64,000 nt of DNA from Trichoplax adhaerens. Taxonomy: Eukaryota > Animalia > Placozoa. The stretch is taken from NCBI RefSeq assembly GCF_000150275.1, contig NW_002060945.1:1678199-1742198 (forward strand). The letters are read 5' to 3'. The notes beneath the pieces are model-generated. The model did not search any database, was not told the DNA's origin, and saw only the letters and a list, made by a program, of their open reading frames with translations. Made by a program: the position numbers and the translations under genes. Positions 6,715 through 44,919 of this stretch are shown here, one piece after another (position 1 is the first letter of the stretch; each line of letters opens with the position of its first letter).

Positions 6715-9700
6715 TTAAATTTTCATATCTCCGCTATGCAACAGACTATGCAATGTCTTCTTTACACGCAACACAGGCAGTCTAGATTCATTGTTGTCCG
6801 ACCAACATTCCCTAATGATCTTGCAAATTGGACTGATGAACTGCATTTCATATAAAAGAACATTTAATTAGGCATTAATGTCTATTTCATCAAAGACGAT
6901 TCAAAACTACACATGCTTCATGTGAAGGCAGCTACAGCGATATGATACCAATATGAAATGGAGATTTATTAATTGACTGTGAACTGTTTTAATAATAACT
7001 TTTAAAATAGGCACACTTACCGGGTGAATCTCCCATTCTTTCTTCAAACGAGGACGTCTCTTACCTACTACAACGACTCTTCTCATCTCTTCTATGCTAG
7101 GATCATGGGGTACCATTTCCGAAAAACAAGGCGCATAATCGTCTGGAGTACCTACAAGATTGTTATACGCGTATAAAGTTAGATTGAAGCAAATACTCTA
7201 CCTTATGAGTTTACACAGATAATATTCAAATTATGAGCGTGAAACCTGTTATGTTACTTCGAGACAAAACTTCCCATAACACTAAACCAAATGAATAGAT
7301 ATCCGCATTTTTAAAAGCGTCGAAGCTTCTCATGTTCAGAGTATCTTCTATGACTTCCGGAGGCATGTAACGTCTTGTGCCAACTCTCTCGTTAGACGGT
7401 ATATCAATAGTATTTGATTTTGAATAATAACACACGGCTAACCCCAAGTCTCCAATTGCACAACTTCCATCTTTCTTTACCAAAATATTATTACTCTTTA
7501 TATCACGGTGAGCAATAGCTGGCTTTCCTACATCATAAAATTTTACTATTATATATCTACAACTAGTTTAACTACATATAACTTACACAAAACGATATAA
7601 TAATATTTAGTGTAATTGTTTCCTATATTCCTTTACCTCTTATCCCTATCATTTCAGTGTGCAGGTGGGCCAATCCACAACAAATTGAATAGGCAATTTT
7701 AAATAATGCTTCTTGATTTAAAGTGGTGTCGGATAGGTAATTAAATAAAGATCCGTTTTCATGATACTCAGTTATTAGCCATAATTCTGTACATGTGCCA
7801 GCGTCCTTGTTATCCGCGGCTATGAACCGAAGAATGTTTTCATGTTGAAGCATAACTACACGATTATAAAAAGTATAGCATTGTATGTCAATTGGGATAT
7901 TGGAGATATCCTTAAAGCAATAGTGTAAATATTCACGTAATACTTTGTCAATTAATCTCTAACTACAGCTTACCAGTTTGATAAATTCTAACTTCTCTCG
8001 ACCAAGAAGCCTCTTCCTTTGATGTGAAAATTTTAACAGCGACATTATCGCCATGAAGATTTCCCAAATATACTGCACCATATCGGCCTTTTCCAATTGC
8101 CGGATACGATATTTTTGTCTTCTTAGCAACCGTCTCTTGCTCCATTATGCGTGAAATACCATTACGTGGGTCCATTGGTAAGGCAGAAGATCCCACACTG
8201 CTTGTTGACGCCCTTCTGCTTTCGGCCACGTTAGTAGGAGGTGGAAAGCAAAAATTCTGAATTGTTGCTAAAATTCGCTTCTTATTGGTTGTACCAGCTT
8301 CACCGTTTTCAAAATCACAGTTGCTAGAAGCGTTGCGTCTTCTCCACCAAATAATAATAACGCCGACCAAGATAGCTAAAAAACCAACTGATATTATAAT
8401 CGCTATTGCACTACTATCGGGATCCGTCGGCATTGATGTTGGATAATCACTCGAGGATTCGGTACTGTTCAATCTAGAAACTGTACCAGCGGTACCTATA
8501 GTATAGTGATATAAACAAAAGCAGACTACAGTAAATTTTTGGACTATAACTACGTTCGTAAGTTCCGTCAAAATTTTTGTTACCAGGAGTAGTAGTTATC
8601 GATGAAGTTCCGTTAATTTTATTGCAAAATTCAGAGTAGCAGCATTTGCCATACTTGGCAGTTAGTAATTTGCACTTTAGAGTCATATGATCTAAAGGAT
8701 CTGAAGGGTTGCCAGAAGTTCGATTAAAGCAGCCAGCTACCCACAGTGAGCCTTCTAATTGTTGGTAGTCGTAATAACAAGCACCGTCAGTATAACAAAC
8801 ATTTCCAAAGCATTGTTGCCCTTCTTCGGATACTCTCTTAATACAATGGCACGGGAAGGCTTTTTTACCTAAGTGGGAGTATAATAGTATAATAAAAAGC
8901 TGTAATATCTAAAAAGTATAAGTATCTAAGAAAAAATGCTAATTCAAAGTGGCATAAAAAAGCGAACTTAAGCTATACTAAAAAACATAATATAATACTC
9001 TGGCTAACAAGGAATGAAGTCTACGATACTGTAAGAGGCTGTAATGATAAAATTTTTAAATCTCTAAAAAATTAGAACTTTGATAGAGTTCATTACTAGT
9101 ATGAATGGTAGATAAACAGTACAATCATACGATATACGTATAATGAATTATACCAGTGTATTACACAAAGTACGTAAAAAGATATAGGGAAATATTATCA
9201 GTAATAACTATCAATAATTCTTATTCTCTCGCAGTAATATGCAAAAGTCGTGCCTCGAATATTAACTATTCGATTGTATTTTCAGAAATCCTTATATATT
9301 CGTTTATACATACGACAGATACAGAAATATTTAATAAGATTTAATTGTATGCTATATCTAAGTAGTCAGCTCTACTGTACAAAGGTTATTTGACCAGTTT
9401 TTATATACTTTTACAGTAGCGTAAAAAAGAAATCCATTGACCCTGAGTACTGTGTAGTATACCGTGCTATATCCGTTCAACATTAGATATAGTTTATATT
9501 AGTTCTAAATTATTTGCTATATAACTGAAAATTGAATACTTAACATTACAGTATTGATAGATACCAATACTAATGATGCATAATATAGTACGCGAAAATA
9601 AGCTACGCATGCATTTACAGGATTAAATTCAACAATAGCAATGATATGGTTTTTAGCAAATGTTTGTTATTATTTTCGATTAATCACAAAGCAATGCCGA

Positions 9701-11883
9701 ATATCCATTACAAAAGTAAGACAATATATTGTTTTCAACATTAATATGTATGTTTAACCGAATCGGTGGCCCTTTACTACCTGGAAGTTGTATAATATTC
9801 ATTATCTTTGAAAATTCATTAATCAATATTGTTTTATAATACAAATTTTTAGTCCATTTGCGTAGTTTCTACTGAAACTTTACCAGTTTATCAAGATAAT
9901 TGGACTTGGGCAATAATTTGCATTATTCTCATGGGAACCTTGTACCTCATTAAATGTTTTTCTTTAAATTTATACTCAAGAAAGGTTAAAAAAAATCAAC
10001 GTAACCGCCAATACTGTAAACTAATGGATGATAAACCTCAATCAACGATTTACAGACTCTTTAAGAAGTATTCTATTACTGCCGTATAAACTGCATCACC
10101 GGATTATACTAAAACTATGAAGTACGGAACTCTCTTCAGCATGTCATTAACTTTTAACCTTTATAAGTAAAAAGATTCAATTATACTTTGTATAATAATA
10201 CGAGTCAAAAACGCTAAGCCAGTAAAGTCTACACAATCTCGATTCATATGTTAGCGTTAACGTATATATGTTGACAGCTTAGGAATTCAATGCATCTATG
10301 TACTCAATTTACGTCTACAAAAGACAGAAATGAACAAAAAAGAATTAATGACTTCATTTTAAAATGTCTGATTAGCATAAAATTATATCTCAAGTAAAAT
10401 CTATATTGCAATATAGTCAGTAATTACGCATTCTTTCTGGTGAAGAGAATATTTTAATGATTGTAATGCAACTGTGGCGTAATTATGTAAAATTAACTCT
10501 ATTTACGAATAGAAAATGGATAACAAACTGTTGTCAGGAGTTAAAGCTTTAACGATAGGTCAAGAATGTACAAGGAGCAGATGTGAAAACGTTAAGAGCG
10601 AGTTTTCGAATTTTTGGCACCATTTAGCATGACTGAAAGAGTTTTTAAAATCACGACCTTACTCTGACTTCTTGTAGAATAGAGTATCCATTGATGGATT
10701 CCAATGTGGAATAATAACTAACGAACTACGTCTGTATGATTGATAGCAAATAAAATTGGCAAAAACGGCTGCAGTATTGGAATCTACTGTTGTAATAGAA
10801 CTATATGAATAATTTAATCATGATAAGATCCGTCATACTTTATTGCTCGCACATACTGTACACTATTATACAGTGATAAACAATGCAATAATACAGATCT
10901 ACTAAAATAGCTCATAACGACTACATTAAGGTAGAATGGCAATTATTCATCGGACACATTTCTTTATACTGATTAATCAAATGATTGTAATCCTTTAATG
11001 TGTAAGAAATCATAGACCGTAGCAATACATACTCAAATTCAATCATAAATTATTAGTCAGCGACGTGAAGTAACCTTTATTGATTTCTAGTAAAAACGTA
11101 ACTTTTAGATACTGTCGTTATGAATCTGGAATAAAATAAGGAAAGTAAATTGACAAATTTCCTATTTTCTGACTTTAATATTAACCTACTGCCGTTTACT
11201 ATCAGACTATCAACTTATCTTTGTTGTTAACATTCAATGCATCCCATTTAGAATACGTAGTATTGAAAATGCATTTCTGATTCAAAGTTGAAATTACCCT
11301 TATTAATTATCAAGAGTACTGTATATCTAGATCCAAGTACATCTACAGTCAGTAAGTAAGTATACTTATAGTACGTATCATCATAGAATTAATATTTTCC
11401 TTACGATAGTAGCATTAATTAATTAAAAGTGCAGAAAGGGTGGAATAAATTGTGTGCTAGGAAATAGCTAGGTTAAGTCAATGGAAGCTTATGATACGAG
11501 TTTTAAAATTATTTGTGCTTTAATTTTCTTTTCAATCATAACTCTCCACTTTTACAATGTAGAGAATAGTAAAAAAGAGATACGATGATCCATCCTTTCT
11601 ATTGCATATTACAAAAACTACTGCCGCAGAAGTTGCTACATCCTTGACAGTAGCTATTGAACTCATTTTGACATGAGTAACCCTATTGCGTTACCAATGA
11701 AAGTGGATTGTAATAACATAAAAAAGTAATCATTTCTACCCATTTGAAGACAACTTTGTGTATATATACAATAATGATCCATCAACAATACTTACTTGGC
11801 GATGTCGGGCCAGTCTGTGCTATTGCCACAGACATTAAAAATAGCAATAGCAATAAAGGCATAGCAAGTTTTTCAGTAAGCAT
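6715..11883 (-). CDS. TGFBR1: TGF-beta/activin type I receptor, ALK4/5/7 (TGFBR1/baboon) subfamily. Exons 11883-11796, 8868-8584, 8495-7974, 7855-7637, 7527-7246, 7151-7021, 6840-6715
   Basis: Signal peptide [22 protein letters not shown], ectodomain with CCYSEFCN box, TM helix followed by WWRRR, kinase motifs [31 protein letters not shown]45 loop [15 protein letters not shown] resembles ALK5 AADNKDNGTWTQLWL. Junctions are GT-AG and in phase. The symbol denotes the ALK4/5/7 group, not one-to-one orthology. Confidence 0.9.
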
Positions 11884-21764: not shown

Positions 21765-21810
21765 TATATCTACGAGACTACTTTCCCTATTTTGGATGAA
21801 TAAGAAATGC
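21765..21810 (-). pseudogene. Degenerate remnant of the SEC61B last exon upstream of GRL copy 1
   Basis: Sequence from about 21610 to 21810 aligns by eye to 26580-26760 and 31590-31770 (aattcttgctggtatacaatt...tacgagactactttccc). The reading frame contains stops and the 5' part of the exon is deleted. Confidence 0.7.
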
Positions 21811-22389: not shown

Positions 22390-22397
22390 TATATAAA
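22390..22397 (+). promoter_or_regulatory. Putative TATA box of GRL copy 1
   Basis: TATATAAA about 105 nt upstream of the ATG, conserved in the paralogous promoter at 27412-27419. Confidence 0.5.
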
Positions 22398-22501: not shown

Positions 22502-25393
22502 ATGGAATCGAAAAGATCTAGTAACGATATAGTTTTAGCCAGTATAGACGAAGATCGAGAAAGTTCGAATGAAAATGGTACTGTGACTTATCATACTTCT
22601 ACAAGGTCATCCCTTGAAAATAACGTAGACACAGAAAATAGTAATAATAGATTTGGCGTTGATGACGGCATCAGATCAGTTTCAAATTCTAACAATCCAA
22701 TTATCATCGCTATTAAACCAATTTTATGCATATTAAAAGTATTTGGCGTGTACTATTCGGTTCCAGATAACAGTAATGTTATCGATACGCATTATGACGA
22801 CTGCCGAAGTGCAATGTTAGCCGACTGTCAACTAAAAAAGAAACGAACAAGAAGAACTATCTTCACTCCTTTGCGACTTTATTCCCTAGCGGTTTGTTTT
22901 TTACTGTGGATTAATGCAGGACGATTCGGGGCTAATGTTTTTATATATCAAAATACATCTTGGATGCCATTTGTTATATTATACGTTCTATGGCTTTTCC
23001 AAGTAGCAGGCAATGTATCTCTTTATTATTATATGTGCCATCGTAAGTTGCCGATACTCTTTAAGCACATTAGTAAGATACAAAGTAACGAATGTCAAGA
23101 CTTTTTAGCTTGTATCGGGCGTTATACTAGAAAACGATGTATCTATTTTCTGATTCCGGCGACGATCTTTGCCTCTATAAATATCGTGTTTCCTATATTC
23201 TCTCAATTTGGTCCAATTACAGAATTGAGAGTTGTAATGGATGTGATAAATAGTCCATGGCAAAATTCTACTGTCTTTCCCTACGTGTACATATTTGCAA
23301 TTCACGTCTATTGTACAATAGCATGGATCTATCCAATGGTTCTATTTTGTTTATGCTGCTTGATAATGGCCCATAAATTCCATACCTTAACTAAACGCTT
23401 TAAAAAGGCGATTCTACGGAATAACAGCGATATTATCCGGACTCTAGCGATTTATCGAGAACAACATCAAGCGTACTGTGTTATAACAGAATTACTTTCA
23501 GATACTTTCTCATTATTTATAGGTTACTTATACGTTACAAACCTTGCAAAAGCTTGCTTTAATTTATATCGCCTAATTTTTAACTGGAGTGTAAATGGTT
23601 TGTTAATGAACATTACATTAATAATATGGTTCATTGCTACTACTGGTATGACTATAATAACTTCATGGGTTGCTTCTATTCTTAATGCAGAGGTACAGTA
23701 TAACAATATTACACTAAACAAGTAATACGATGAAGTTTATTCTCTATTATTATTTCAATATATGCGAATTCGAAGTTCGTCAAGAACGAGTACGCTTACA
23801 ATACACTAAATTATCATGTTATCGATTTGTATCTATATAATCAATACTTATAATATTGTTAAATATATTAAACATAAAAATACAAAAACTTGAATAATGA
23901 TGTAAATAGACTCGTAAAATTGTTATCTAAATTTAGACAATTTCGACTTCCCTTTCGAAGTAACTAAGATTTATCGCTTAGTATTCCGTTACGCTAGATT
24001 TGCTTTAATGGTATTTTATTGTAATAAATATTCTTAGGCACATTCTCCAATATCAGTGTTATACTCTCTACAAACTCGAAATATTGGTAACGACGGATTA
24101 GCAGAGGTAAGCTTTATATAGTTATCGCAATTTCTACATAAGTAATAACATAAAATCAAGTTAAAGTATATACTGTAAACATATTACTTTATGTCGTATT
24201 GTACTATTTCGCAGTCACTCATAACATTATCGTATGTAGCTTATCAGTAAAATTACTTTTATTTTCTATTAATTATAATAAATTAGCTAATGCATTACCA
24301 GTATTGAATATGCAGACAAAGTAATAGCAAATGATTGTAGGAAACAGTGAAGACTGTAGGCGCTATAAATAAATTAACATAACAAACTATATTTGAGTAT
24401 AATTGAAATAGACTGTAAAGCTATCTATATTCGGTATAATACAAGATGTCTATATTTAATTAAGAATATGTTACAGACTACAGTGAAATCTAAATACACT
24501 ACAATCAATAACTCAAGATATTGTCTATATGTAGATGGTAGCAATTTATTAACGATCGTTTATAACTGTATAAGATTAAATAAGTAATATTTCTTTAAAG
24601 CTGATCTAGTAAAATTCTAATAAAATTCAATTTTCTATAGTTGCTCCTATTTCAGTCTCGCCTTCTAGCAGAACCCATTGGTATCAGTATTGTTGGAATG
24701 TTTGTGATAACAAGATCTTTGATTTTGACAGTAAGTGTTACCTACATTTCTTTAGATGTATTATTACAACCAACTAGGTACATTTTCAGATCTCTATTTA
24801 CAATTCTTTCTCATTACTGTTTATATTTATATAATGGGCGAGATATCGCAGTTTATGTCTACAGTATAGTTTCTTTAGTGAGAAATATATGGGATTGAAT
24901 TTAGTTGTCTTTACTGCGGTAGCTATCTTATGTAGGTACTAATAGGCGATATGGACTGCAGCTAATATTAATATTAATTCTATTTCGACCTTAACTTAAA
25001 ATATTAGAAAAGATCCATTACATACATTCAGTTACGCCATTACCCAATAAAGTGATTTTAAGATTGTGGCATCAAAACTTAGTATACATTACGTATAAGT
25101 ATATAATTACATAGTACGTATATAATATAGGAGTATTAAGTCGGTAAGCCTGAGTCTCTTTCTAGATTCGCATGATTATACTGTCAATTATCGTTTATCA
25201 GATTAGGTTAAAATGAATGATATATGTAATTAATTAGCTGTTAGACTACTAGGTCTTCTGTAACTGTAATATGTATCTTTACGGATATCTTTGATAACGC
25301 GATAGTAATCTTTATATTTTATTTTTTCTAAAGTTGCTAGGTATTTTTGTTACCTACTTCTTTCTTTTAGCGCAGCTACATGGAAAGGCTTAA
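22502..25393 (+). CDS. Gustatory receptor-like (GRL, insect OR/GR superfamily 7TM ion channel), copy 1, 469 aa. Exons 22502-23692, 24038-24106, 24641-24730, 25334-25393
   Basis: Multiple hydrophobic helices; C-terminus GISIVGMFVITRSLILTLLGIFVTYFFLLAQL carries the TYhhhhhQ(F) signature. A long first exon followed by three phase-0 introns near the 3' end is the hallmark GR/GRL gene structure. Confidence 0.9.
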
Positions 25394-27504: not shown

Positions 27505-30375
27505 ATGAAATCGAATAAATTTAGTAATGATATAGTTCCACTTAACATAAATGAAGATCGAAAAAATTCGGATAAAAGTGGGACTATAGCTCGTCATATT
27601 TCTACAAGATCATCCCTTGAAAATAACGTAGACACGGAAAATAGCAATAATAGATTTGGCATTGACGACGGCATCAGACCTATTACAAATTCTAACGATC
27701 CAATTATCATCGCTATTAAACCAATTTTATGCATATTAAAAGTATTTGGCATCTATTATTCGAATCGTGAACATCGAACTTCAATGTTAGCCGACTGTCA
27801 ACTAAAAAAGAAGCGATCAAGAAAGACTTTTTTCACGCCTTTACGAATTTATGGCTTGGCGGTTTGCCTTGTGCTATGGATCAATACAGGACGATTCTGG
27901 GCTAATATTTTTACATATCAAAATACATCTTGGATGCCATTTGTTATATTATACGTTCTATGGCTTTTCCAAGTAGCAGGCAATGTATCTCTTTATTATT
28001 ATATGTGCCATCGTAAGTTGCCGATACTCTTTAAGCACATTAGTAAGATACAAAGTAACGAATGTCAAGACTTTTTAGCTTGTATCGGGCGTTATACTAG
28101 AAAACGATGTATCTATTTTCTGATTCCGGCGACGATCTTTGCCTCTATTAATATCGTGTTTCCTATATTCTCTCAATTTGGTCCAATTACAGAATTGAGA
28201 GTTGTAATGGATGTGATAAATAGTCCATGGCAAAATTCTACTGTCTTTCCCTACGTGTACATATTTGCAATTCACGTCTATTGTACAATAGCATGGATCT
28301 ATCCAATGGTTCTATTTTGTTTATGCTGCTTGATAATGGCCCATAAATTCCATACCTTAACTAAACGCTTTAAAAAGGCGATTCTACGGAATAACAGCGA
28401 TATTATCCGGACTCTAGCGATTTATCGAGAACAACATCAAGCGTACTGTGTTATAACAGAATTACTTTCAGATACTTTCTCATTATTTATAGGTTACTTA
28501 TACGTTACAAACCTTGCAATAGCTTGCTTTAATTTATATCGCCTAATTTTTAACTGGAGCGTAAATGGTTTGTTAATGAACATTATACTAATAATATGGT
28601 TCATTGCTACTACTGGTATGACTATAATAATTTCATGGGTTGCTTCTATTCTTAATGCAGAGGTACAGTATAACAATATTACACTAAACAAGTAATACGA
28701 TGAAGTTTATTCTCTATTATTATTTCAATATATACGAATTCGAAGTTCGTCAAGAACGAGTACGCTTACAATACACTAAATTATCATGTTATCGATTTGT
28801 ATCTATATAATCAATACTTATAATATTGTTAAATGTATTAAACATAGAAATACAAAAACTTGAATAATGATGTAAATAGACTCGTAAAATTGTTATCTAA
28901 ATTTAGACGATTTCGACTTCCCTTTCGAAGTAACTAAGATTTATCGCTTAGTATTCCGTTACGCTAGATTTGATTTAATGGTATTTTATCGTAATAAATA
29001 TTCTTAGGCACATTCTCCAATATCAGTGTTATACTCTCTACAAACTCGAAATATTGGTAACGACGGATTAGCAGAGGTAAGCTTTTATATAGTTATCGAA
29101 ATTTCTACATAAGTAATAACATAAAATCAAGTTAAAGTATATACTGTAAACATATTACTTTATGTCGTATTGTACTATTTCGCAGTCACTCATAACATTA
29201 TCGTATGTAGCTTATCAGTAAAATTACTTTTATTTTCTATTAATTATAATAAATTGGCTATGTATAGTTAACTACGCTAATACAGCTGAAGTAAACAGAG
29301 ATAGAATAGTAACATTCTACACTCTGCAATATCTAGTGGTGAAAATTATTGATTATATCTCATCTATATTACTTACAGTATAGTATATCAATAACTTAAT
29401 ATATTTTCTATATGTACTATAGTTGGTAGCGATTTATTAACGACCGTTTGTAAATGTATAAAATCAAATAAGTAATATTTCTTTCAAGCTAATCTACTAA
29501 AATTCAATTTTCTGCAGTTGCTCCTATTTGAGTCTCGCCTTCTGGGAGAACCCATTGGTATCAGCGTTGTTGGAATGTTTGTGATAACAAGATCTTTGAT
29601 TTTAACGGTAGGTATTACAGATAATTCTTTAGATGTATTATTACAACTAACTAGATACATTTTTCAGATCTCTATTTACAATTCTTTCTCGTTACTATTT
29701 ATATTTTTATAATCGGCGAGATATCGCAGCTTAAATCTATAGTATGTAAAGAACTCACGAGGTTACTTGCCGTACTTACCCATTAACCCGTTATAGTTTC
29801 TTTATTGATAAATATGTTGGATTTAGTTATCTTTACTGTGGCAGCTATCTTATATAGCTATTAATATACAGCACAGATTACAGCTAATATTGATATTAAT
29901 TAATTAATTATACTACACTTCGACCTTAATCTAAACATTAAAGAAGACTCATTACTTACATTCAGTTATACTATTATCTAATAAAGCAGTTTTAAGATTG
30001 TTGCATTAAAGCTCAGTATACGCGTATATGTACTATTGTACATATAAAAATATAATAGCGCGTGAATGACAGACAATATTACCAACATATCAAGTATACA
30101 GTATACGATATGTTAAATCGGCTGGGCTATCTATCTTTCTAGATTCGCATGATTATACTGTCGATTATCACTTATTAGAATAACGTAAAATGAATGATAT
30201 ATGTAATTAATTAGTTGTTAAACTACTAGGTCTTCTGTAACTGTAGTCTATATCTTTACAGATGTCTTTGATAACGCGATAGTAATCTTTATTTTATATT
30301 TTATTTTTTCTAAAGTTGCTAGGTATTTTTGTTACCTACTTCTTTCTTTTAGCGCAGCTACATGGAAAGGCTTAA
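27505..30375 (+). CDS. Gustatory receptor-like (GRL) copy 2, 458 aa. Exons 27505-28662, 29008-29076, 29518-29607, 30316-30375
   Basis: Tandem paralog of 22502-25393 with the same exon phases, intact ORF and identical last exon (VTYFFLLAQLHGKA*). Confidence 0.9.
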
Positions 30376-31727
30376 ACGAATTAAGATTCTCGTGAGCACT
30401 TACAAAGGGTTTACAATTTCTGAAGTTACAGTTACGAGGAAAAAATACTGTTACTACTTAAGACGAAAACAAGTTTATATCAACTCATTAATAAACTATT
30501 TAGATGGTTATTATATTAATTAATTACTTAAGGATTATCACTAAACCTATCTTAATTTTATCGTAATAGCGTATTTTATATAAACTATACTATACGTATA
30601 TCTTTAAGCTATACTCTGTTTACACGACGTATATTTTAAAAGTCGCTTTAAATAATTAAAATTTAGAACATAATTTTTTGTCCCAAATTTGAATATCAAG
30701 CAATATTCTATTGTTTGTAGTTGTTTTACTGAGCCTTAAATAGTTTCAGGTACTATCATGGAAATTGTAATGCAACAACTAGCTCGTCTTTACAGTTTAC
30801 TTTTACAGGTTATCTTGATATCTAAACTTTAAATAATATGATATTTCTATAGCGCATCGGAATTAATCTTTATGTTCTATACGGCTAAATATAAATTAGA
30901 CTCTGTTAGCTGATATTTTCACTACTACATACCCCTGAACACTTGTACATTGCTTTAGATCTTCTTATAGAATGAAATCTAATTTATCCTTCACTATAGT
31001 AACTTCTTTGAGAATATTAAAGTCACTTCTGGAGATTAATAGTGTGACTACTTTTCGCGATTTGATATTAGACATTATGATGTACGGTATTAGCGTAATA
31101 CTAAATATATTGTAGATAAATATAGGATATCTTGCTAACATCTATCAGATTTCTGTTAAGATATTAGTTGCTACTGCATATCACGATTAAAAAGCAGTAC
31201 TTGTATTTACTATAATCTAATGTTACATAGTATTACAATTTATGCAACACCAATACCGACTTAATATAATAAATCGAAAATTTAGCATCATCGTATAGTA
31301 TCGATTTCTAACAGGGTACAGTAGATTAAATTATCTAGCGAATGTATGGTGAAAAGATGACATGAGCTTTCTTTTCTACTCTGTAAGAGTGCAGTGATCG
31401 ACTGTGCCTGTTCTATCGTTTAATCCTGCGCATCCAGCGACTAAATACTACCTTGAAGTAAAGGGTTAGGTCATGATTGGAGTTTTAGCGCTACTATCAT
31501 GAAAATAGTTTTACTATGTTACGAATAATAGGATGAAAATTCATGAAAGCGTAATATATTACTATAAGACGACGTTCATATTTTAGCAGAATTAAATACA
31601 GTATTATGTGACGTAAAGCTAAATTATACATAATTTTTATTCCAAGAAAACCAATCGTTTTTTAAGTAAGAATTTATTAATCACGTCATTAGGTTAAAAT
31701 TAATAACAGTTCTTGCTGGCATACAAT

Positions 31728-33650
31728 TTATCCACGAGAATACTTTCCCCATAAATGGAGTAAGAAAATAGCAACAATGTATATGATACTCATGACTAAA
31801 ACTGGCACAGGCTCTCTGTTGATATAAAAAAGAGTGACACAAATTATTTAGTTGTTGCACGAGTAGAATAAGAAACTACGCTACCGATAGTATGATCAAA
31901 GGATCACTTAGCAATATCTATTCAGACTTACACTTTAAATCCTGGAGAATCTTCCGTGAAAAATCTCCACGATGTCGCTGCACCTGCAGAACCAACTCTT
32001 GGAGCAGCACCGCCGGCACCACCACCGGTAGGTTTTCTTTTTGAAAATACAAACGTAAATATTTACGTCATTATATACATGTATATACATCTACAAAAGA
32101 TCGAGGCTGTTAACAGTCGTTTCACATCATAACAGCTACTACTACTATACTACTGCACATACAATTTTTGATAAGTCAACGAAACCGTGTAGGGCTTCAA
32201 AATCACAACTTCAATAAATCTAGATCTGATTTAAACTCGCATATTGTCATGTACGCTTATCTAGCAGCATGTGTATGAAATAATAGTGGCAAATTGATAC
32301 TATCAAAAGGCGTATAAAATCTTGTAACTCAGAATACCTTTGGCGTACTCCACTTGCACCCTTGACCGGTGACTTTCCACCAGCAGCAGCTCTCCCAGAC
32401 CCAACGGAAGTAGAAGAAGGCGAAGTAGGCTGAAATAGATTGAAGAGTTTGTTATAAAGTGTGAAGATTGCAGTTATCATAGTCAATAACGTCTATGTTA
32501 TATCTATACCAGTAGAAAATAATTGTAGTGTCAGGTTTAAGCGTTTTGCATACTGTGCGAAATGTAGACTCCGTGACTGTACTGATTAGTCTTCAATCTC
32601 AAAGGTAACAATTGTATACTACCGCATTGATGGAAAGTTTACGCTGTCGCTTTATAGTCAGGGGTCTGCCATGGCATTGGAAGTAAAAATGCTAATTCAT
32701 TTAGGTATAGTATAAGCCCAATCATGAATATGAGTGTCGTTGACGTTGATCGAATTGTGGAAGGGGAGAATGGTATATAATACAGTGTATAAACATATAT
32801 AATGGTATGCGCGTACAGTACAGTATATAGGGTACTATAAACAGTATGTAAGCGTATATACCATTTCACGACCGGTTGACTGCAGATAAATTTTAGGAAA
32901 ATTCTAACCAGGAACTTTAACATTACTAACAAACGAATAGCAGTCATGGGAAACTGAAAATTACACCGATTACCATTTGTAGATATAAAATAATAGATTA
33001 TTATGGGTGATGGTTGGCACGCGAAAATTTTTAAAGCGATCCGAATGATCAAAGCCAAGCAAAACTTTGAAAGCTTCTATTGCAAGTCATCCTGTAGTGC
33101 GGTGTAAGCAAATTGAAGACATGTTAAGCTGATTTTCCATAGTGAAGTGGCATCGATTGGAAATGGATGATGTAAGATTCAAAGCAATTTGAATCCTACA
33201 TGGGTAGCAAGAGTCTGTTGATGGTCGGCAAGCGTCAATTTTTAAAGCGATCAGAATGATGAAAGTCAAACAAAACTTTGAAAGCTTCTATTGCAAGTCC
33301 TCCTGTAGTACGGTGTAAGCAAATTGAAGACATGTTAAGCTGATATTTCCATAGTGAAATGGCATCGATTGGAAATGAATGATGTAAGATTCAAAGCAAT
33401 TTGAATCCTACATGGGTAACAAGAGTCTGTTGATGGTTGATAGTAAAACGATTTTGCATTGCTTTGGTACAATTTCAAATGTTGAATGACGATTGTTTGA
33501 AAAGTGGTTATCCCCATTCAGTACGCTAACTTGGGGTTAGGGTCACTTTTCAATAGTACATTCGAATGGAGAAATTCAATGCAATCATCCATCTATTGCA
33601 TCAAGAGATTCTATTCGTTTTCATACGTCTAATGAAGGAAATCTTACCAT
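31728..33650 (-). CDS. SEC61B: Protein transport protein Sec61 subunit beta. Exons 33650-33648 (ATG only), 32429-32338, 32036-31932, 31815-31728
   Basis: Spliced product [14 protein letters not shown]...VRQRKP...[41 protein letters not shown]. An ATG|gtaag first coding exon matches the vertebrate SEC61B layout; that exon is the least certain part. Confidence 0.93.
33009..33437. repeat. About 212-bp direct tandem duplication in SEC61B intron 1
   Basis: gatggt...tttttaaagcgatc...caaaactttgaaagcttctattgcaagtc...caagagtctgtt occurs twice (about 33009-33220 and 33221-33432) with scattered substitutions. Confidence 0.9.
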
Positions 33651-33757
33651 AGTTTTAATTTGGATATTTTACAAGAGAGAAAAAAGTTTTGCTGTCTTCA
33701 ATTGGGATCCTATCGATCAGTGAGAGTACTTTGACTTCAGTAGTCTACGTTACGCTG

Positions 33758-33860
33758 GCACGCGCAGAGAACGCTCTTCTGTAGGCTTGTTTTCGTTGAT
33801 TTGCATGGGACAGTATTGCGCACGCGTGGTTGGAGGAAATTGCCCCATGGTGCACGCGCA
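33758..33860. promoter_or_regulatory. SEC61B proximal promoter with three GCACGCG (NRF1-like) motifs and an octamer
   Basis: GCACGCGCAG 33758-33767, TGCGCACGCGT 33817-33827, TGCACGCGCA 33851-33860 and ATTTGCAT 33799-33806, in a CpG-rich patch 100-210 nt upstream of the ATG. Factor assignments are inference. Confidence 0.5.
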
Positions 33861-33869
33861 GTGCAACAG

Positions 33870-35515
33870 TATCTGTACAGTACACGCTACAGTAGTGTGT
33901 ACCGTACTCTACACTGTACAGTACTATACAGTACAAGACGTGCAGAGTTAGGCTGAAGATGACTGCTTTCCATCGGACAGGTTGGTTTGCCTTAGTAAAC
34001 TATGCAAGTTGAACAATTTCAAAATGGAAGCCTAAGCGTAATCATCCTCTACAGTACAGTACTGTACAGTATGTTGTGTTCAGGAACTACTAAAAGAAAA
34101 GGAGAGGGACCTTTTCTTCCAGTAGTTGCGGTGGTTTGTTGATCAGGTGTATTACTAGACTAATTATTCCCATGCAGTCGAACATAGCAGACCGATTGCA
34201 TTTCAATTTTATTTTCTACTCGATCTCTCAGGTTATGGACTGAAACATTTCAAGCGATACCACTTGTAATTCTTGAAGATATCGAGTCTAAAATGCAATG
34301 CAATCTGTAATCACCTACTCTAGTAAAAAAGCGATGTTGACATTAGAAAGGAAGCATCCTCCATGCTAGAGTAGGCCATGTTTTACGTGTAAGCATTTGA
34401 TTCGCTGCTGACGTCTCTATACAGTATGACAGCATTTGTGCATTGTCATCAATCAGTACTGTACCCAGTGTACAGTACTTTCGTGTACTGTACACTGTAG
34501 TGTTCATTGTGCTACTGTACTGTACTGTACTGTACTGTACTGTAGAATTTGCACTGTACAGTACAGTGTACAGTACAGATTCTGTTCTGTAAAGCTTTGA
34601 CCGTAACGACGGCTGTTCAAGTTACAGTGTACAGTACTGTACAGTAGCAGCTACAGTATTATGTCGACGTGTACAGTACTGTACCACTGTAGACTCATAC
34701 AGTACAGTACTGTACAGTGTACAGTAGACTACATACTGTACAGTAGACCATGAACTACTGTACAGTACGGTACTGTACTAAAAGTCGAAAAGAAGACCTT
34801 TTGGTAGGGGTACTGGATACTGTACACAGTAGTTACCCCAAAACAAGAAATCACATTTCATTGGCCAAAACAACAGTGTCATTACACTGCTGTACTGTAG
34901 TACGCACTTTTCCACCGTACACGATGAGAAAATAGCCGCTACAATTAGTGCTATACTGTACACTGTGGGATACGGATACTTAATTTGGGCCAATGAGATG
35001 CAATTTGTTGTTTTTTGATCACTACTATACAGTATACACTCTTTCAATAGTCCATGTCTTCCACTTTTTATACAGTACTCAGTGAGTGTACACACTGCCA
35101 TCAATGGACTACTACAGTAGATACTATAGTATACCGGTATACTGTACACTGTACTGTACAGTACTGTAGTACTGTATCTAGTAGTCCATAGTACAGTACA
35201 GTACAGTACTGTACACTGTACAGTACACAGTATACTGTACAGTACACAGTATACTGTACAGTACATAGTCCACAAAATAAACCATCAAAATACTGTACAG
35301 TACTGTACAGTAGATACTACAGTACTGTATACCGGTATACTGTACACTGTACTGTACAGCAGTATCTAGTAGTCCATGGTGCACTGCTGTACAGTATAAT
35401 AAATACTGCAAAAAATAAACCATCAAAATACAGTATGCGGTGATTTACAGTACACGTACTGTACTGTATCTGAAAAGAAATTCTACCCACTGTACTGTAC
35501 TGTACTGTACTGGAC
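33870..35515. repeat. Dense ACAGT/ACTGT pentamer repeat island in the SEC61B-ERP44 divergent intergenic region
   Basis: (ACTGT)n run at 34514-34543, mixed-orientation arrays at 34550-34780 and 35110-35515, and an internal imperfect duplication of about 190 bp (35111-35300 vs 35305-35435). Confidence 0.9.
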
Positions 35516-35763
35516 ACATTGGTCATTGACTGGAGTTGATGATCGCTGCAGGTATCGCATTGTACTGTTTAGAGCACTGGTGGAGAAGCTTCAGCTATCG
35601 TACCGTACCGGACCGAACTAGTGCAAGTATTCCTTAATTAGAATTCGTAAAGGACCATCAAGAGAACGTTGAATCGATCGATCTGCTTGCTATTTGTCCA
35701 TCGACTCCTTCTTCAAGCTGTCTGTCTACCAGATTCGTATGGTTTGAAATTAGCCCAGGGAAA

Positions 35764-38700
35764 ATGCGATACCTTTCCTTACTTTTGGCATTGATGGTAG
35801 GATTATACATTCTTTTTATACTGGATAATTTCTAAAATAGCTTATCAATCAGTTCAAACCCGACCTTTCTCAGGTCTACCTGCAAGACTGAAACACTGTG
35901 TCTTTGAAAATTTCACTGACGTATTTTCACTTCACTCAGTCAAGATAGATGATACTTATTTCACTGTCCTTTAATCGATGTAGAGATACATAAAATGCCT
36001 TGAAGAAGACTTAATGTTGAATCATGAAAGTAAAATGAAGACTATTTGTGATAGGAAATTTTCCACAGTCATTTCTTGTTTGATCTCGATCATTGTTTTC
36101 AATTGAGCCAAATTGAAACGAAACAGGATAGTGCACAAACGGTTGAGTCGCTTTACTCTGTACTATTGCAATATTCCTTTCAAGGTTAAAGCCGATACGA
36201 TTTCAAATCAATCCTTGATTGATATCATATTAAAACTGCGTTGTTCGTTGAATTCGCTCGGCTATCAAGCTTTGTACCCACAAGAAGGCATACAGTAACT
36301 TTGCACTGACTATATTCCCAGCGATAGAGCTGTGGACAACAATAATATCTCAATACGGTATAGAAAATGCTACAGCTTCAAGTAGAGATAGTCGATCAAG
36401 CAGACCTGCATTCAAACACGACCAACTTTCATCCGCTATGTTTCCAGGCTTGATGACAGTAATTGTATAAATAAATCCAACAGACTGACGTAAATTGGCG
36501 CTTATTTATACTGCTACTATTTATAAGCGCAACTTGATTCAACGAGTTAAGCATCAAAGTACTATCCAACTCATTGCTATATCACCAATACACATCTTCC
36601 ACAGTACAGTATAGACTATCTCTAAATACATAGTAACCTCCATCATGTTATGCTAGCCTACAGTGCTGCATCTTAATACGACAATAGCACCACGTATTCA
36701 TTATATCTAAATGGACGCGTATATTTAGATATACATGTCCAATTAGTTATACTATGACTACACAACGACACATCAATTATAATTACATATAGCGTATATA
36801 GATTTCAATAATGTTATGCAACACATGGATTAACAGAGAGTATCCCATTGATTAGCTGATACTCGCTCAAAATTGACTCGGTTGAAGTATTGAATGCTTA
36901 GAGGACTGCTATATAAGAAAATAAAGAGTATCGTCTTACATGCTCGTGCAATCCACAACTAAGACACAATAATATAAATATTTTCATTCAGTAGACCTCT
37001 CATCATGTCTAGATTGCAAAATGGATATCCATTAATTTATACTCGGATAAAAGTGAGCATTTAATTAAAGACTAGCTTTCTAGAATTGTTCTGTCTAGAC
37101 ATACTGTGTATTACAATTAGAAATTAGAAATGATGAGCGACTTGGACAACCGAGATGTAAATCTGAGAGAAAGCTTGATCAGCATTGCAATAATATTGTT
37201 ATGAAGTAACAGAATAATAAGTACTATAGGTAATGGAATACCTATAAAAAAGTGATCTATTCGATGTTGGCGTAATTATTTCTATTATACGAGTTTATTC
37301 CTGTGTTTCCACTGTACTATCGCTGAAATTACCAGTTGTCCTACTGGAGATTAATCCAACGCCACTAATTTAAAGTTTACTCTGCGAGATCGATATTGGC
37401 GTGGCACAGGCGTATGCGTATTTTTATCGACTTGGAGAACAGTACTATTACGTTCGCTGACAAACACTTTCACTGCCTAGTTCAGCGCTTTAAAATCAGT
37501 TAGAAATAAAGCTGATATGTAAAATTAAAAATTGTGTTACTTCTTACAGGATGATCTTGCACCTGATTAATTGTTGAAGGATAGCAGTATGAAGTGTTAA
37601 AGTGGAGTAGTTTTGTTATTCGCTTGCTCATAACAGCTATGTTGAGATAGGGTATCTTTTGTGTTAAGCATTATCAGTTATACCCAATAATTTTATACTT
37701 TCACAGTCACTAACAACGTACTACTGTATTTAAGCTTAGTAAATACAATTAAACCAGATTATATATTTTCTGGTGCGGTGAAAGTAATGCATGAATAATA
37801 CTAAGCGGATGATTTTTATACCTACTCCTGATTGACGCTAACGCTTTTAATGAATCATCAAACGGCCCTCGATTTCGTGATTGATGTAGTGATTAGAGTA
37901 TTTCTATCATTAAAATACATGTATATTTCCTAGCTACCGATCATCGCTTTTCACCTAATTAATTACGTTCAATAAATATGAAATAAAATCTTAACAATGC
38001 ATGCACATGTATGCAGTGTTAGTTGTAACTTTTAAAAATTGACTACAAATTGTACTAGACTGTAGACTATAACGATCGCTAATCTCTAGCAGGCTTTATT
38101 ACAAATTCGTTACAATATCATAGCAGATCCTAAGTTTTATTGATATTATCTTTTCGTCTTACAGAAGATAATCGGTATTATACAGTTACAGTTTCATGTA
38201 GCGTACATCAAAATGATTAAATGCCCCGCAAACCCGAAATTTGAAATTTTTGTACCTGTAGATAGTGTCCGTGCCTTCGTTACAGATTATTAGGTGATGA
38301 CAATCATGGCAATACTCTTTATGTTCCAATCACCTGGGTATAAATTATTGGCACAGTTATAGTATTAGCATACTGTAACTTTAATCTTCAATTCAGTCTT
38401 ACTATTTCTTGACTTATATAACTGCGGAAATGTTGCAACACTTTCTGTACAATACAATAAACAATTGCTTTTCGTACAACAATTCATTTATTAAAATACA
38501 TTTTTTGTTGATTATTATTTTAGTGTGTATGTCTATTCGAAGAATCTGATGCGGGCGCCATTGATTTAACTGAGCAAAATTTCGATGCTGAACTAGGTAT
38601 TATATCTGCTATGTAATTTCAGTATTATACGTACCGTGTACGTATGCTGGCATTTTTTTCGCCAGTGTAGCGCTAATTACTATTGGACTGATATGTGCGT

Positions 38701-41700
38701 AATTAGGTTAAATTTTGCCTGTTTTCCTACTGTGTAGTTAGTATTGATTTTCATCCTGATTCAAAGATCTATAATGTATATCCTGCGGTTCTTCTAGCGT
38801 CGATTTCGTATTAGAAAGGCTACTATTTAGATGCTATGACTACTTTCTTATACATTGGCCGTTTTAGACACTAAATTTTAGTTTTACCTTACGGCATCTA
38901 TCGGTATATCGATATTGGTATATGGAGTGTATCAGTAACGTTTATGCAACTTTCTCTCCAACAGGCAAGGCAGAATTTGCTATAGTAAATTTTTATGCGG
39001 ACTGGTACGTATATAGCTGTAGTTCATCCAATGAAATATTGAATGCTGCGTTAAATCCTTAGGTCTACTTGGTCTTATTATAGTACTGATATTACTGTAA
39101 CTATGTTTAGTTTTTAAATTGGCATGTTATTCCTTTCCTATTATCTATATGTTAGTAGTTGCATATTGACATAACATTCATACACAATGAGTGCATACAG
39201 TGATTATAAATTCAAATCATATCTGAATTAAGCCATGAGAAAGATTTTGGCATTATACTGTAAGCCTTTTGTACTATATGTCTTGCTACTAAAATAGCAC
39301 AGGATATTAATATAAATTAATTAACCATTATATACTGCCAGTATTTAATATGTATTACTTCCTTGTTGCAAATATAAGTTTAAAATCAGAAAAGAATACA
39401 AAAGCCTAATTTTCTTATAATATGATATTGCAAATACTGGCAGGTGTAGATTGCTAGTTCAGCTCGACTTGTAGACCTGAATAAGGGATAGTTTTATAAG
39501 ATTGTAGTATTAGGGATATCGTTAGAAATTTATGATAGCTACGAAAAGGTTTATAAAATAAATACCATAGGCGTATTTTTATTATGAATTCATAGCAGTC
39601 TCAGCTTACAATCGTCTTTAAAGCAATTGTAATTTAACTTTTAATTAGTCTATTGTATGGATTGCTATAGTATAAATCCGTCAACATCAGTTCACAAACT
39701 AGGAGATATTTGATTTTAGAGGTTTCTGTTAATTTTTATTTGCAGGTGCCACTTCAGTCAGTCACTAAAACCAATCTTTGATCAAGCTTCCGATGAAATC
39801 CAACGAGAATTTCCGGTAAGACTTTTTAAAAGTTAAGCTAAAGTTTATGTCAAAGTTAAGTTACCATAGGATTCGTATTAGGTAATGATACGAAAGGTCA
39901 CATAGAAATTTCGAAGATGTTCATTTTTCTAAGTGCCTATTACCGACGTGATTGTTGCATAATATAAATACTCAAATTTTATCTTATACAGACGGTCATG
40001 CTTGCCAAAGTTAATTGTATAACTCAAGGTGAGACAGATCGATGCACGTAATTCTTTCTTACATCATTTTTTCTTAAAATTATCCTACTGCTTAAATTTA
40101 GCATCTACTGTATTCTAAATCTAAATCAATGAAAACTTAAGGCATACATCTATATATTTAATATATTTCTTGTTAACTTGTTTGTATTAGCCAATGTGGC
40201 CAATAAATATCACGTTAACAAGTATCCAACACTAAAATTATATAGAGATGGAAGGGTTAGTAAAAATTCTGAATTGCTGTGTCTTCTTGAGTGATTGAAG
40301 ACTGTAATTTTATAAAGAAATGTTTACTTATTATGCACTTAATATTTGCATTATAATTCTTTAGGTATTGAAAAAAGAATATCGAGGGCAAGTAAGTTCA
40401 GAATAACATTAGCCTTATTGGGCATAATGTTAAAAGCGAATAATTGAGTACTTATTTATTAAACTGGACATATTTATACAGAGAACTGCTGAGGCTTTTA
40501 AAGAATTCGTTCGAGTACAAATGAAAGATGATATCGAAGTGGTCCCTGACGTTGAAAAGATGAAATTAGATGTATGACATTATTTATGACATCATGTTCA
40601 TGTAGTCTAGTATATTACTGACTATTGCCTTAGTCGAAATAGACGGTGTACTTACTAGTAAGAAATGCTAGGTTCATCATTGCAACAAAAAAGAGTGCCA
40701 AAGAGTTTCGTTAATGTTTATGCTTTTTTTCACCTTAGACTGACAGGCGTCATATTATTGGATATCTGGAATCTAAGGAATCGAAAACCTACGACATATT
40801 TAGGAGGGTACGAATTGATATTTCAAAACTCTTAGTAAAGCAGTATTCTGATTTAATGTAATCTCAAATCTTTGGTTATTCAGGTAGCTAACTTCTTTAG
40901 GAGTGACTGTCAATTTCATGTGGCATTTGGGTAAATTTAAGTTGCGTCATTTTGTAATGTTATAATAATTACGCTTTTCGGTACAAACTTGCTTTTCATT
41001 CTCATTTAGGGAAGCTTCAGTTAGTTTCAGACATGGTGGTGATACGGCTGGATTCAGGGATTCTCAGGTGAGATTAATCGCCATCGCAAATTGACATTAT
41101 TTATTTCTTATCGTAGTTTACTCCTTAAAGGTATTAACATCCATTTTTTACCGTATTTAATAAGTCCACTGATGATATATACTACAGCAACGGATTTTCG
41201 CCTGGTAATAATTATTTCTTTCAATGGACTCAAGATAAATGTGTACCCCTTGTTCGAGAAATTACATTTCAAAACGCTGAGGTTCGTAGCTATATTACCA
41301 ACCATAAATACGTAGGATCATTAACTAGTCTGCTTATATTTTAATTTAGGAATTGACAGAAGAAGGATTGCCATTTCTTCTTTTATTTTATGATCCTAAT
41401 GGTGATAACAAAATTGTAGAAACATTTAGAAAAATTGTTGGATCAGAACTATACTCTGAAAAAGGTTCGTCATCCCTTCCACATACTTTATATGCGATTT
41501 TTTTCAGTCAATTGTTAGAAAAGAGGTTATACAGTTTTCCTCGAATTTGCAGACAATATGAATTTCCTTACGGCAAATGGCTACCAATTTAGCCATCCTT
41601 TAGTACATCTAGGAAAGTCTACAGCGGTTCGTATCCACGAAGAATAAGAATTTTGTAACCGGAATTGTTATACTCTATTGACAGTTTGCTGTTCTTGCTG

Positions 41701-42217
41701 TCCCTATAATATGAATTACTTTTCTTGTAATAGGACTTGCCTCTTATAGCTATCGATGATTTCCGCCATATGTACTTATACAAAGATATCAACAAATTAA
41801 GGTAGCGTATTTTTGCACATACAGTACATTCTATTTGGAGTCGGATAAGGCTATAAGTAGCGCAAATATTACTTGATCATTTGTTTTGTAGTGAGCCATC
41901 AAGCCTGAAAGAATTTATTGCAGATTTACACTCTGGAAAACTCCATAGGGAATTCCATCATGGACCTGACCCTACGGTATATGTTTGATTGCAAAACTTA
42001 AATATTGCAATTATTTCCTTTCTTCTCAATACTAATATTAAATTGGGGACAATCGTATGCTTCTGCCTTATAGAAACCAAATCCTTCTGATGCAGCGTCT
42101 GAATCTTCGAATAAAGACAGCACAAAGGAAGTATCAACACCTCCGAAGAGTCAGTTTGCAAAATTAAGTCCTAGTGATCAAAGATACAGCTTACTTGGAC
42201 AGAGGGATGAACTGTAG
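35764..42217 (+). CDS. ERP44: Endoplasmic reticulum resident protein 44 (PDI family), multi-exon. First exons 35764-35796, 38524-38596, 38965-39004, 39746-39815; many short exons follow to the stop at 42215-42217
   Basis: Signal peptide MRYLSLLLALM|CVCLFEESDA, thioredoxin motif VNFYADWCHFS, then KYPTLKLYR, KKEYRGQR, KCVPLVREITFQNAEELTEEGLPFLLLFY, DLPLIAIDDFRHMY, DLHSGKLHREFHHGPDPT and C-terminal RDEL*. The first exon is less certain. Confidence 0.93.
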
Positions 42218-43372
42218 TTGTTTATGACGTTATAGCAGGATGGGTGCATATTTAGGTTCTATGAAGATTAAGACAATGGAACTCTTACAGTTTATTGTAC
42301 ACCACGTAACAAAATCAGTTACTAACCGTATTAAGCTAGATGATTGAGTACATTGTTCTAGCTACATTTTCAAGCTTTATGCAATATTGTAACGAACGTT
42401 CAATGTTACGTAGATGAGAATTTTCCATATCTAATGTACATGATTGTTTGCTATTGTGGCTTATCGTTTGCATTAGCTTACCTTTTAAAGAGCTAATGCT
42501 AGAATATTTTTACAGTAGCATCACATTAAATCCTAACTTGATTGACAACGTGTTAAGGCAGGTCTTCAACCTTTATTATTTTATCTTAATCTTCACATAT
42601 ATTTTATTGTACTATTGCAATGAATAGACAAACATAAGCCGTGTTATTCAAGCACAACTTATGAACCCTATCTTAAATAAAATTATAAAATAATATAGCA
42701 GATGGTTGAAGATATTTGCAGGCATTTACGACTACCGAGTTCATCAATAAATTACCAATATTCATCATACACGTTTATCAATGAAACGCTTAGGTAAAAG
42801 AATCGTAGCATAATGTAGGATGGGCCCTTTTATGTACATATTGATGTTTAAGTGCGCATTTGCCAAAGACTAGCTCTATATCGGTGAAAGCTTACAGTAA
42901 TATCTGATCTATTATTTATAAATGTATTTAAAGTACTCGATTTTCCTTTAATAGCATAAGTTTAGAAGCAACAGTGATAGTATTATTTTGTGGAGTAAAT
43001 TATTATACACGACTGACACGAATCAGATATTTTTAATTGAAAGTGAAACGATCATCATACATGTAGATCGTGCATTACTTTTCGTAAAATAAATATTATA
43101 ACGACAGTTGTCCTCATGTTAAAAGTCAATTACTTCTTAGATTAATACTGTAGATTAGTAATAATATTTCGTTGAAAATATAGCCAAATTATAGAATAAC
43201 TTTTCATCTGAATAGGTAGAGGTTAACAGTATATTCATGCCAATGAGCAGTAAGCCGCAAGGTTTTTGTTCCAAAAATACTTATATAAACTTTGTGGAGA
43301 CAATTCATGATCTCTATCGAGTATGCCACTCCTTTCAGACGGTTTTCAAAGGTTCGCATACTTGCTATGCTT

Positions 43373-44919
43373 CTACTCCTTTTTTTTAACGGTTTTATCA
43401 ATTGCTCGTTGATTACGATTCTTTATAAGTGATCCACCGGCATACCCAGCAAGTCCTGCAGCAACACCCGCAGCTAAACCCAAAAGTTTAATCCCGCTAT
43501 AGACTGCCACAGCTGGTCCTCCAACAGCAGCACCTACTACAGCACCCGTTACTGGAATTAACGCATACTTATACTTTCCGGCCTGAAAATAAAGGAATCG
43601 TTCAGTTGAAATTAATCGCTCCAAGGTTAAGAATGAGGTAAGCTGGACGATACCATGATCGCGTGATTACCTGAGCTAGACTCAAATTGCCCCGCTGAAG
43701 GTTACTTTGAGTACAATCTATATTATCAGATATCGATTCGATCGTTTCGCCTTGTTCCTAAATAAATATAGAGTTATCCAGTAAGGTCTCTAAGCTCGCA
43801 ATATGTAGGAAAAGATAGGCTTACTCTTAACATCGTGACATAAGTTTCGGATAGCTCCTTGACTTCTAATAAATTCTAATGTAAATTTATGAAAATAATT
43901 TAAAATAAGTCTCCAATAAAGCCACAGTATTAAAGATAGATACGGCTGTTCAAGTACTAGGTCAGAAAGGCTATTTTGAACAATGAAAGTCCGAGTCACC
44001 TTTTCTAACTTCTCCCACGATGCTTTAATTTCCTTCCTGTCTTCTTCTATAATGCTTAATTGAATTTGTTCACCATTATCGTCTAATAAGAATTAGATTG
44101 ATCAATTTGCTTGAAAGATTCATTGGAGAATGACAAACTATACGAAGTAATAAATGTAATTTGAAATTCTATAAATAAATTGCTTACCATCGGCTCCGGT
44201 ATTTCTGTGAATAGCTCTTTTACTAGCGGTTTTATCTTCTGATACCTCATCTATTTCTCGTTTGATATCACTTTGGATAATTTCAAATGAAGCAATAGAA
44301 TCAAATGCTTTTTCCTTAACCACTTTTACACGTTGGTCAAACTTGGCCAAGTCTTCATCTTTAACTTGACATCTAGTTTTATCTAACTCTTTTAGAGTTG
44401 CCTTGAGTTGCTAAATGCAATCAGATAATGACGTGTTGAATGAAAGCTAGAGTAAATTTCTAGCGCTAGAAGAGTGATACTAACTATTCATTAGTGACAT
44501 GCAGCACTCTTGGTAAAAGAGACCGAGCAATACGCTAATACTACTATGCCAAAGAGTAGTAATTATGCTACTTTCATTTCGTTTTAGAAATATAAAAGAA
44601 ATACCTCAATGAATGAAAGTAGCAGTCGATATACGAGAAAACTTACATTCAAGGTGTTGACAACATGTAGTTGTTCTCGACGAAGCCTGCCCCAATCGCC
44701 AATATCTCTAAACTAAGGGATATCAAAATGATTAACTTAATAACAATTCTAATGATGGTACATAACAGAATATGTTATAATTACACGTATTACTACCTTG
44801 ATTATGTTTTCCTTCTGCTTAGCCAATCGATCTAGATTCGTTGGAATGGCGACTTCGGTAAAAGCGTTTAGTGATCTTTCTATAACACGCAGTGAATATT
44901 TGTCCTCTGCCATAGCCAT
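43373..44919 (-). CDS. STX17: Syntaxin-17 (autophagosomal Qa-SNARE), multi-exon
   Basis: N-terminus MAMAEDKYSLRVIERSLNAFTEVAIPTNLDRLAKQKENIIK resembles human STX17; SNARE motif (SWEKLEKVT...EQGETIESISDNID); C-terminal Gly-rich double-TM hairpin TGAVVGAAVGGPAVAVYSGIKLLGLAAGVAAGLAGYAGG; basic tail ending KKKE*. Confidence 0.9.

Follow-up and report, generated by a model that had tools for sequence, protein, structure and literature searches.

Small groups of orthologous genes that have stayed together since early animal evolution are known from several surveys of metazoan genomes (Irimia et al. 2012, PMC3514665; Simakov et al. 2013, PMC4085046; Robert et al. 2022, PMC8851819). In the latter two surveys, a block comprises at least three orthologues with five other genes at most lying between one and the next, and collinearity is not required. 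Vertebrates have lost 85-91% of the oldest blocks (Robert et al., PMC8851819), so that any such block kept in mammals belongs to a minority. Here we describe a block of this kind in the placozoan Trichoplax adhaerens. The window that we analysed is a 64-kb stretch of the 9.66-Mb scaffold C1412 (positions 1678199-1742198). Four genes lie within 38 kb of it: a type I TGF-beta-family receptor of the ALK4/5/7 class (-), SEC61B (-), ERP44 (+) and STX17 (-). The same four orthologue classes are neighbours in mammals, and the Trichoplax block is probably an inherited remnant of a neighbourhood of genes that the last ancestor shared by placozoans, cnidarians and bilaterians possessed. Synteny between Trichoplax and human was reportedly described already in the Trichoplax genome report.

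On the mammalian side, a 1.03-Mb stretch of human 9q22.33-q31.1 carries GALNT12, COL15A1, TGFBR1, ALG2, SEC61B and NR4A3 (PMC3668473), and a single yak scaffold carries ERP44, STX17, NR4A3, SEC61B, ALG2, TGFBR1 and COL15A1 (PMC9756674). This linkage, taken from the literature and not from sequence comparison, agrees in both membership and order with what a first-pass annotation of the window had given for mammals. In the published human and yak gene lists the genes lie within the gap that the block definition allows, and the Trichoplax block, which runs receptor, two other genes, SEC61B, ERP44 and STX17, falls under the same definition. Like the catalogued blocks, it is common to a non-bilaterian and to vertebrates.

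Trichoplax and mammals are alike in having the four orthologue classes within a handful of genes and in having STX17 and ERP44 adjacent and convergent. They differ in gene order. Read along the minus strand, Trichoplax has STX17, ERP44 (on the opposite strand), SEC61B and the receptor, whereas mammals have the receptor, ALG2, SEC61B, NR4A3, STX17 and ERP44. The span differs as well (38 kb against about 1 Mb). Moreover, unlike in mammals, an ALK1/2-class receptor gene lies beside the ALK4/5/7-class one in Trichoplax, and two inserted membrane-protein genes are absent from the block of mammals. As for orientation, we take human TGFBR1, SEC61B and STX17 to lie on one strand, with STX17 and ERP44 convergent. 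The first-pass annotation had proposed that the order was shuffled and the relative orientations kept; the shuffling is evident, and the orientations agree insofar as these human strands are correct.

The annotation had also seen neither ALG2 nor NR4A in the window, and the matches to the corresponding domain families bear this out. All four zf-C4 nuclear-receptor loci of the genome are on other scaffolds, and therefore no NR4A gene belongs to the block. ALG2 was found neither in the window nor within 50 kb on either side, and it was not located among the GT1/GT4 matches of the genome. The candidates that these matches offered were rejected as PIGA-, ALG11-, ALG1- and GLT1D1-like genes; the PIGA-like gene is on the same scaffold, 1.75 Mb away.

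The genes of the block were identified exon by exon. Exons were read frame by frame and each was searched singly; the sole full-length protein used was the database STX17 model (P0001, XP_002110857.1). The genome searched was the 105.63-Mb assembly (1,414 contigs, about 32% GC). When exons were scanned singly against Pfam and NCBIfam, the receptor returned only the kinase domain, and the exons of STX17, ERP44 and SEC61B had no match. Nonetheless, matches in PDB and Pfam, the L45 loop of the receptor, the RDEL end of ERP44 and the database model of STX17 bear out the four genes and strands named in the first-pass annotation. For each of the four, the genome holds one clear candidate orthologue. 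The orthology proposed there is right as to gene class, but for the receptor it goes no further than class level; TaBabo branches deep in a published tree. Coordinates of all features are collected in the table.

Table. Features of the Trichoplax block and its surroundings. Plain positions are those of the 64-kb window; positions preceded by C1412 are those of the scaffold, and L037 and L038 mark sequence beyond the right end of the window.
Feature	Position	Strand	Description
ALK1/2 (Saxophone)-class type I receptor	1416-2949	(+)	visible exons; PDB scores, GS motif
Type I TGF-beta-family receptor, ALK4/5/7 (Baboon) class	6715-11883	(-)	kinase-exon PDB matches, L45 loop
Receptor, signal-peptide exon	near 11883	(-)	
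Receptor, ectodomain exon	~8477-8908	(-)	
Receptor, transmembrane, juxtamembrane and kinase exons	8595-6715	(-)	
Receptor, GS-box region	~8090-8230	(-)	[11 protein letters not shown]
Multi-pass membrane-protein gene, first of tandem	22502-23725	(+)	single exon, 407 aa
Multi-pass membrane-protein gene, second of tandem	27505-28695	(+)	single exon, 396 aa
SEC61B	~31728-32400	(-)	three visible coding exons
ACAGT/ACTGT-rich short tandem repeats	33870-35520		SEC61B-ERP44 head-to-head spacer; periods 19-22
ERP44	38524-42217	(+)	at least 11 exons; ends in RDEL and stop
ERP44-STX17 spacer	42218-43372	.	1,155 bp between stop codons, tail to tail
STX17	43373-44919	(-)	seven exons, 280 aa; C-terminal glycine-zipper hairpin of two transmembrane segments
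30-bp tandem repeat	46178-46529		11.7 copies, 90% identity, open in two frames
Ornithine cyclodeaminase/mu-crystallin gene	46952-47971		
ACAGT/ACTGT-rich sequence, right flank	L037 2900-4200		similar to that of the SEC61B-ERP44 spacer
Cytochrome P450-like open reading frames, tandem	L037 4386-5888 and 7277-8773	(+)	single-exon, ~500 aa, highly similar
DNAJC22 (wurst)-like open reading frame	L038 2902-4071 (C1412:1785100-1786269)	(-)	TM2 domain; by-eye call
TEX10-type (Ipi1_N) gene	C1412:7837442-7837708	(+)	6.1 Mb from the block

ERP44 and STX17 form the part of the block that can be followed furthest. One ERP44 exon matches only ERp44 chains in PDB (2r2j, E 5e-6), the gene carries a thioredoxin exon as expected of ERp44, and it is present in a single copy. 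The corresponding model of Trichoplax sp. H2 is 392 aa long and carries Thioredoxin and Thioredoxin_6 domains. The first ERP44 exon that we recognised follows a splice acceptor (a pyrimidine tract and AG at 38500-38530), so the signal-peptide exon should be further upstream, where it was not found. The H2 model begins at the same splice-acceptor point, and its annotation seems to lack the signal-peptide exon too.

The STX17 gene is identical to the database model XP_002110857.1 (TRIADDRAFT_54205) and is also single-copy; the twin of this model in Trichoplax sp. H2 bears the name Syntaxin-17. It combines the N-terminal domain, Qa-SNARE motif and double-transmembrane hairpin that characterize syntaxin-17. 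The precomputed Pfam table lists STX17_N (PF26585) for this model, for which our local Pfam copy gave no match, and the SNARE exon shows weak likeness to Qa-SNAREs. Searched exhaustively, the hairpin exon retrieved the Trichoplax model as well as proteins of 300-330 residues, which match at their C-termini. Those named syntaxin-17 or syntaxin-17-like come from Trichoplax sp. H2, Ptychodera, Liolophura, Biomphalaria, Gigantopelta, Rhopilema, Anneissia and others. Neither the hairpin exon nor the SNARE exon found STX17 in PDB, and in the Atlas the hairpin exon matched nothing but bacterial glycine-zipper clusters. A word search with the full STX17 model yielded a single beetle protein, and beetle sequences dominated the results when a 15-sequence alignment was used.

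The three SEC61B exons encode an N-terminal part rich in Ser, Gly and Ala, a segment reading [13 protein letters not shown], and the transmembrane segment; an exon with the first Met was not located at the locus. Exon 3 resembles the Sec61 beta chain 2wwb_C in PDB (E 1e-4). The transmembrane exon is the top match of the genome to Pfam Sec61_beta at 22.4 bits, which is under the 27-bit cut-off because this exon represents only part of the domain. The conserved segment preceding a C-terminal transmembrane helix is what defines Sec61 beta, a small tail-anchored protein, and both elements are present. SEC61B and ERP44 are arranged head to head.

Assignment of the receptor rests on its kinase exons and L45 loop. 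For both kinase exons, human TGFBR1 is the top PDB match (128.5 and 94.6 bits), followed by BMPR1B (127.1 and 87.3 bits) and ACVR1 (119 and 76.7 bits); in one of the two exons the lead over BMPR1B is small. The L45 loop, ADNKDAGT...LWL ([11 protein letters not shown]), is of the ALK4/5/7 type that specifies Smad2/3. We found three type I receptor genes and one type II gene in the genome, the numbers published for Trichoplax (PMC2657120, PMC3169577). The third type I gene, on scaffold C1408, has a BMPR1-type L45 loop. As the other two type I genes are ALK1/2-like and BMPR1-like, the minus-strand receptor is the only ALK4/5/7-class candidate. It lacks a canonical SGSGSG box, and Pfam TGF_beta_GS misses it, yet matches both other type I genes. 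With so degenerate a GS box, it is a divergent ALK4/5/7 member at best. In the published tree, 'TaBabo' sits deep among type I receptors (PMC2657120).

The neighbouring ALK1/2-class gene scores highest against ACVRL1 (277.9 bits) and ACVR1 (277.8 bits) in PDB, followed by BMPR1B (269 bits) and TGFBR1 (260.6 bits). The two Trichoplax receptor genes are arranged tail to tail, about 4 kb apart. Among vertebrates, ACVRL1-ACVR1B and ACVR1-ACVR1C are neighbours as well, but in tandem orientation.

We surveyed the 10 kb on either side of STX17 in other animals; the sample contained no anthozoan, sponge or amphioxus STX17. Downstream of STX17, a convergent gene with Thioredoxin and Thioredoxin_6 domains is present in the hemichordate Ptychodera flava (411 aa, 4.6 kb away), in the scyphozoan jellyfish Rhopilema esculentum (7.0 kb) and in the crinoid Anneissia japonica (5.9 kb), and Trichoplax sp. 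H2 has the layout seen in the window. In tblastn searches, exons 8-12 of Trichoplax ERP44 matched the Ptychodera, Rhopilema and Anneissia genes in the correct order and on the correct strand, at up to 86% identity. The convergent STX17/ERP44 pair is common to Placozoa, Cnidaria, Echinodermata, Hemichordata and mammals. The pair is not retained everywhere: in the beetle Tribolium, STX17 is followed by genes for a short-chain dehydrogenase and a ribosomal protein, and STX17 and ERP44 are not adjacent. The larger genomes of five other protostomes, Paralvinella, Ridgeia, Gigantopelta, Biomphalaria and Pycnogonum, showed no ERP44 exon within 10 kb of STX17, and no called gene within 10 kb downstream of it. 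None of the surveyed loci had a SEC61B or receptor exon in the 10-kb flanks.

How often such a block should arise by chance was estimated by simulation with 7,000 orthologues, 11,500 Trichoplax genes and 20,000 human genes. Complete shuffling produced 0 four-gene blocks per genome under either of two gap rules, so the observed block is more than shuffled genomes yield. We also used a deliberately harsh null model, in which genes are randomly placed inside 17 perfectly conserved linkage groups, and left the matching orientations out of the count. This model gave 0.55 blocks per genome when up to five intervening genes were permitted in both genomes, and 0.01 when no more than two were permitted in Trichoplax and one in mammals. 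With 30 linkage units, again random inside, the observed tightness was reached by 0.03 blocks per genome; since the tight limits were chosen with the data already in view, both the 0.01 and the 0.03 are optimistic.

We take the block as inherited because its tightness beats chance and because the STX17/ERP44 pair is seen in five phyla, and we infer that the linkage of all four genes is ancestral rather than coincidental. The deep conservation claimed in the first-pass annotation therefore holds: its orthologue classes are right, the block is tighter than chance predicts and the pair recurs across five phyla. The microsynteny survey that it had called for reached only this pair, which was found in other phyla and was gone in Tribolium. 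The core of the ancestral arrangement would be the tail-to-tail pair with its close 3' ends, surviving in at least five phyla. SEC61B, the ALK4/5/7-class receptor and its ALK1/2-class neighbour were probably part of the same small neighbourhood, and in Trichoplax and mammals, whose genomes rearrange slowly, only a few genes have come to separate SEC61B and the receptor from the pair. Local transpositions would then have altered the order without flipping the genes. Retention was probably mostly passive, helped by short intergenic targets and few breaks, and selection, if any, would have acted on the tail-to-tail pair only. A TEX10-type gene on the same scaffold also counts for an ancestral neighbourhood, as human TEX10 is a 9q31 gene beside INVS and ERP44.

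Several observations weigh against this interpretation. Trichoplax and mammals are the only animals in which linkage of the receptor and SEC61B to the STX17/ERP44 pair could be checked and is seen. The orthology of the receptor to ALK4/5/7, judged by sequence, holds at class level only, and the match in orientation relies on the human strands given above. The block is without ALG2 and NR4A, and no further 9q22-31 orthologue was recognised by eye in the 50-kb flanks. Finally, the statistics depend on thresholds, as the loose published gap rule gives about 0.55 chance blocks.

A more ambitious explanation sees SEC61B, ERP44 and STX17, joined in vertebrates by ALG2, as a selected and co-regulated secretory neighbourhood more than 600 million years old. 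The 3' ends of the convergent pair would interact by way of common termination, antisense or enhancer elements, and the two type I receptor genes would be bound to this chromatin domain as well. We regard this as unlikely.

A simpler version, in which SEC61B, ERP44 and STX17 (with ALG2 in mammals) share a chromatin domain or stress control and the receptor is a passenger, appears improbable too. Three adjacent genes do encode proteins of the endoplasmic reticulum (ER) or of the ER-Golgi route, mammals add ALG2, and SEC61B and ERP44 stand head to head. Moreover, sites that differ by one mismatch from the ER-stress element CCAAT-N9-CCACG number 5 in the window against 1.18 expected, and four of the five (at 33825, 36585, 38333 and 42755) are located in spacers next to SEC61B, ERP44 and STX17. 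However, the window has no exact ER-stress element, one-mismatch sites are without known function, and their clustering was noticed post hoc. Sites resembling the unfolded-protein-response element occur in the window at chance level, and by our own estimate chance would place three ER genes side by side a few times in each genome.

Equally doubtful is a genomic regulatory block, in which enhancers of the receptor would lie in or around its housekeeping neighbours and breaks would be selected against. Many old microsyntenies have been tied to such cis-regulatory constraint (PMC3514665). As in genomic regulatory blocks, a signalling or developmental gene is linked over deep time to housekeeping genes: in Trichoplax as in mammals, the neighbours of a signalling receptor are housekeeping genes unrelated to it, and the relative orientations match on the human strands given above. 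On the other hand, type I receptors are broadly expressed and are not typical targets of such blocks. The receptor lies about 20 kb from SEC61B, with two unrelated, lineage-specific membrane-protein genes between them, and the gene order differs from that of mammals. No developmental gene belongs to the best-kept part, STX17/ERP44, which is itself broken in Tribolium. In genomic regulatory blocks proper, the stablest element would not be two housekeeping genes, nor would the block be interrupted and reordered.

It is very unlikely that four genes sharing an ancestral chromosome came close independently in the two lineages: perfect linkage groups with loose gaps do yield 0.55 chance four-gene blocks per genome, and the flanks hold no further 9q22-31 genes, but only 0.01-0.03 blocks are expected at the observed tightness even before orientations are considered, and the same convergent STX17/ERP44 layout in five phyla cannot be chance.

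Inheritance of an ancestral neighbourhood thus remains our preferred explanation. While ancient microsynteny in general is already known, the convergent STX17-ERP44 pair in a jellyfish, a crinoid and a hemichordate is new. Neither the four-gene block nor the pair is named in the literature and supplements that we searched, where they may sit unlabelled in orthogroup tables. Microsyntenies shared by placozoans and mammals are few, and each survivor is a test of selection versus inertia in gene order. The STX17/ERP44 pair, having neither a transcription factor nor a shared promoter, fits neither a regulatory block nor a bidirectional promoter, and is therefore a clean case for asking what keeps convergent neighbours together. 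The block also provides a positional marker for class-level orthology of the divergent Trichoplax 'Babo' with TGFBR1, for which trees are ambiguous. Otherwise, it is what the known slow rearrangement of placozoan genomes would lead one to expect.

The two membrane proteins encoded between the receptor and SEC61B are nearly identical save for the N-terminal part, and neither has a match in Pfam. The repeats of the SEC61B-ERP44 spacer have a similar counterpart in the right flank. The 64-kb window contains no Rfam family and no tRNA.

Genes of the 50-kb flanks, recognised by eye only, include CDK7-, ESCO-, ALDH7A1-, TAF5-, P450- and DNAJC22-like genes. The P450-like open reading frames form a tandem in the right flank. 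The DNAJC22-like frame lies about 45 kb past the window; human DNAJC22 is at 12q13 near ACVRL1 and ACVR1B, and the Trichoplax gene may represent a further paralogon linkage. Inside the window, beyond STX17, the 30-bp repeat lies directly upstream of the ornithine cyclodeaminase/mu-crystallin gene, and the H2 model of this gene, which has 504 aa, may include the repeat.

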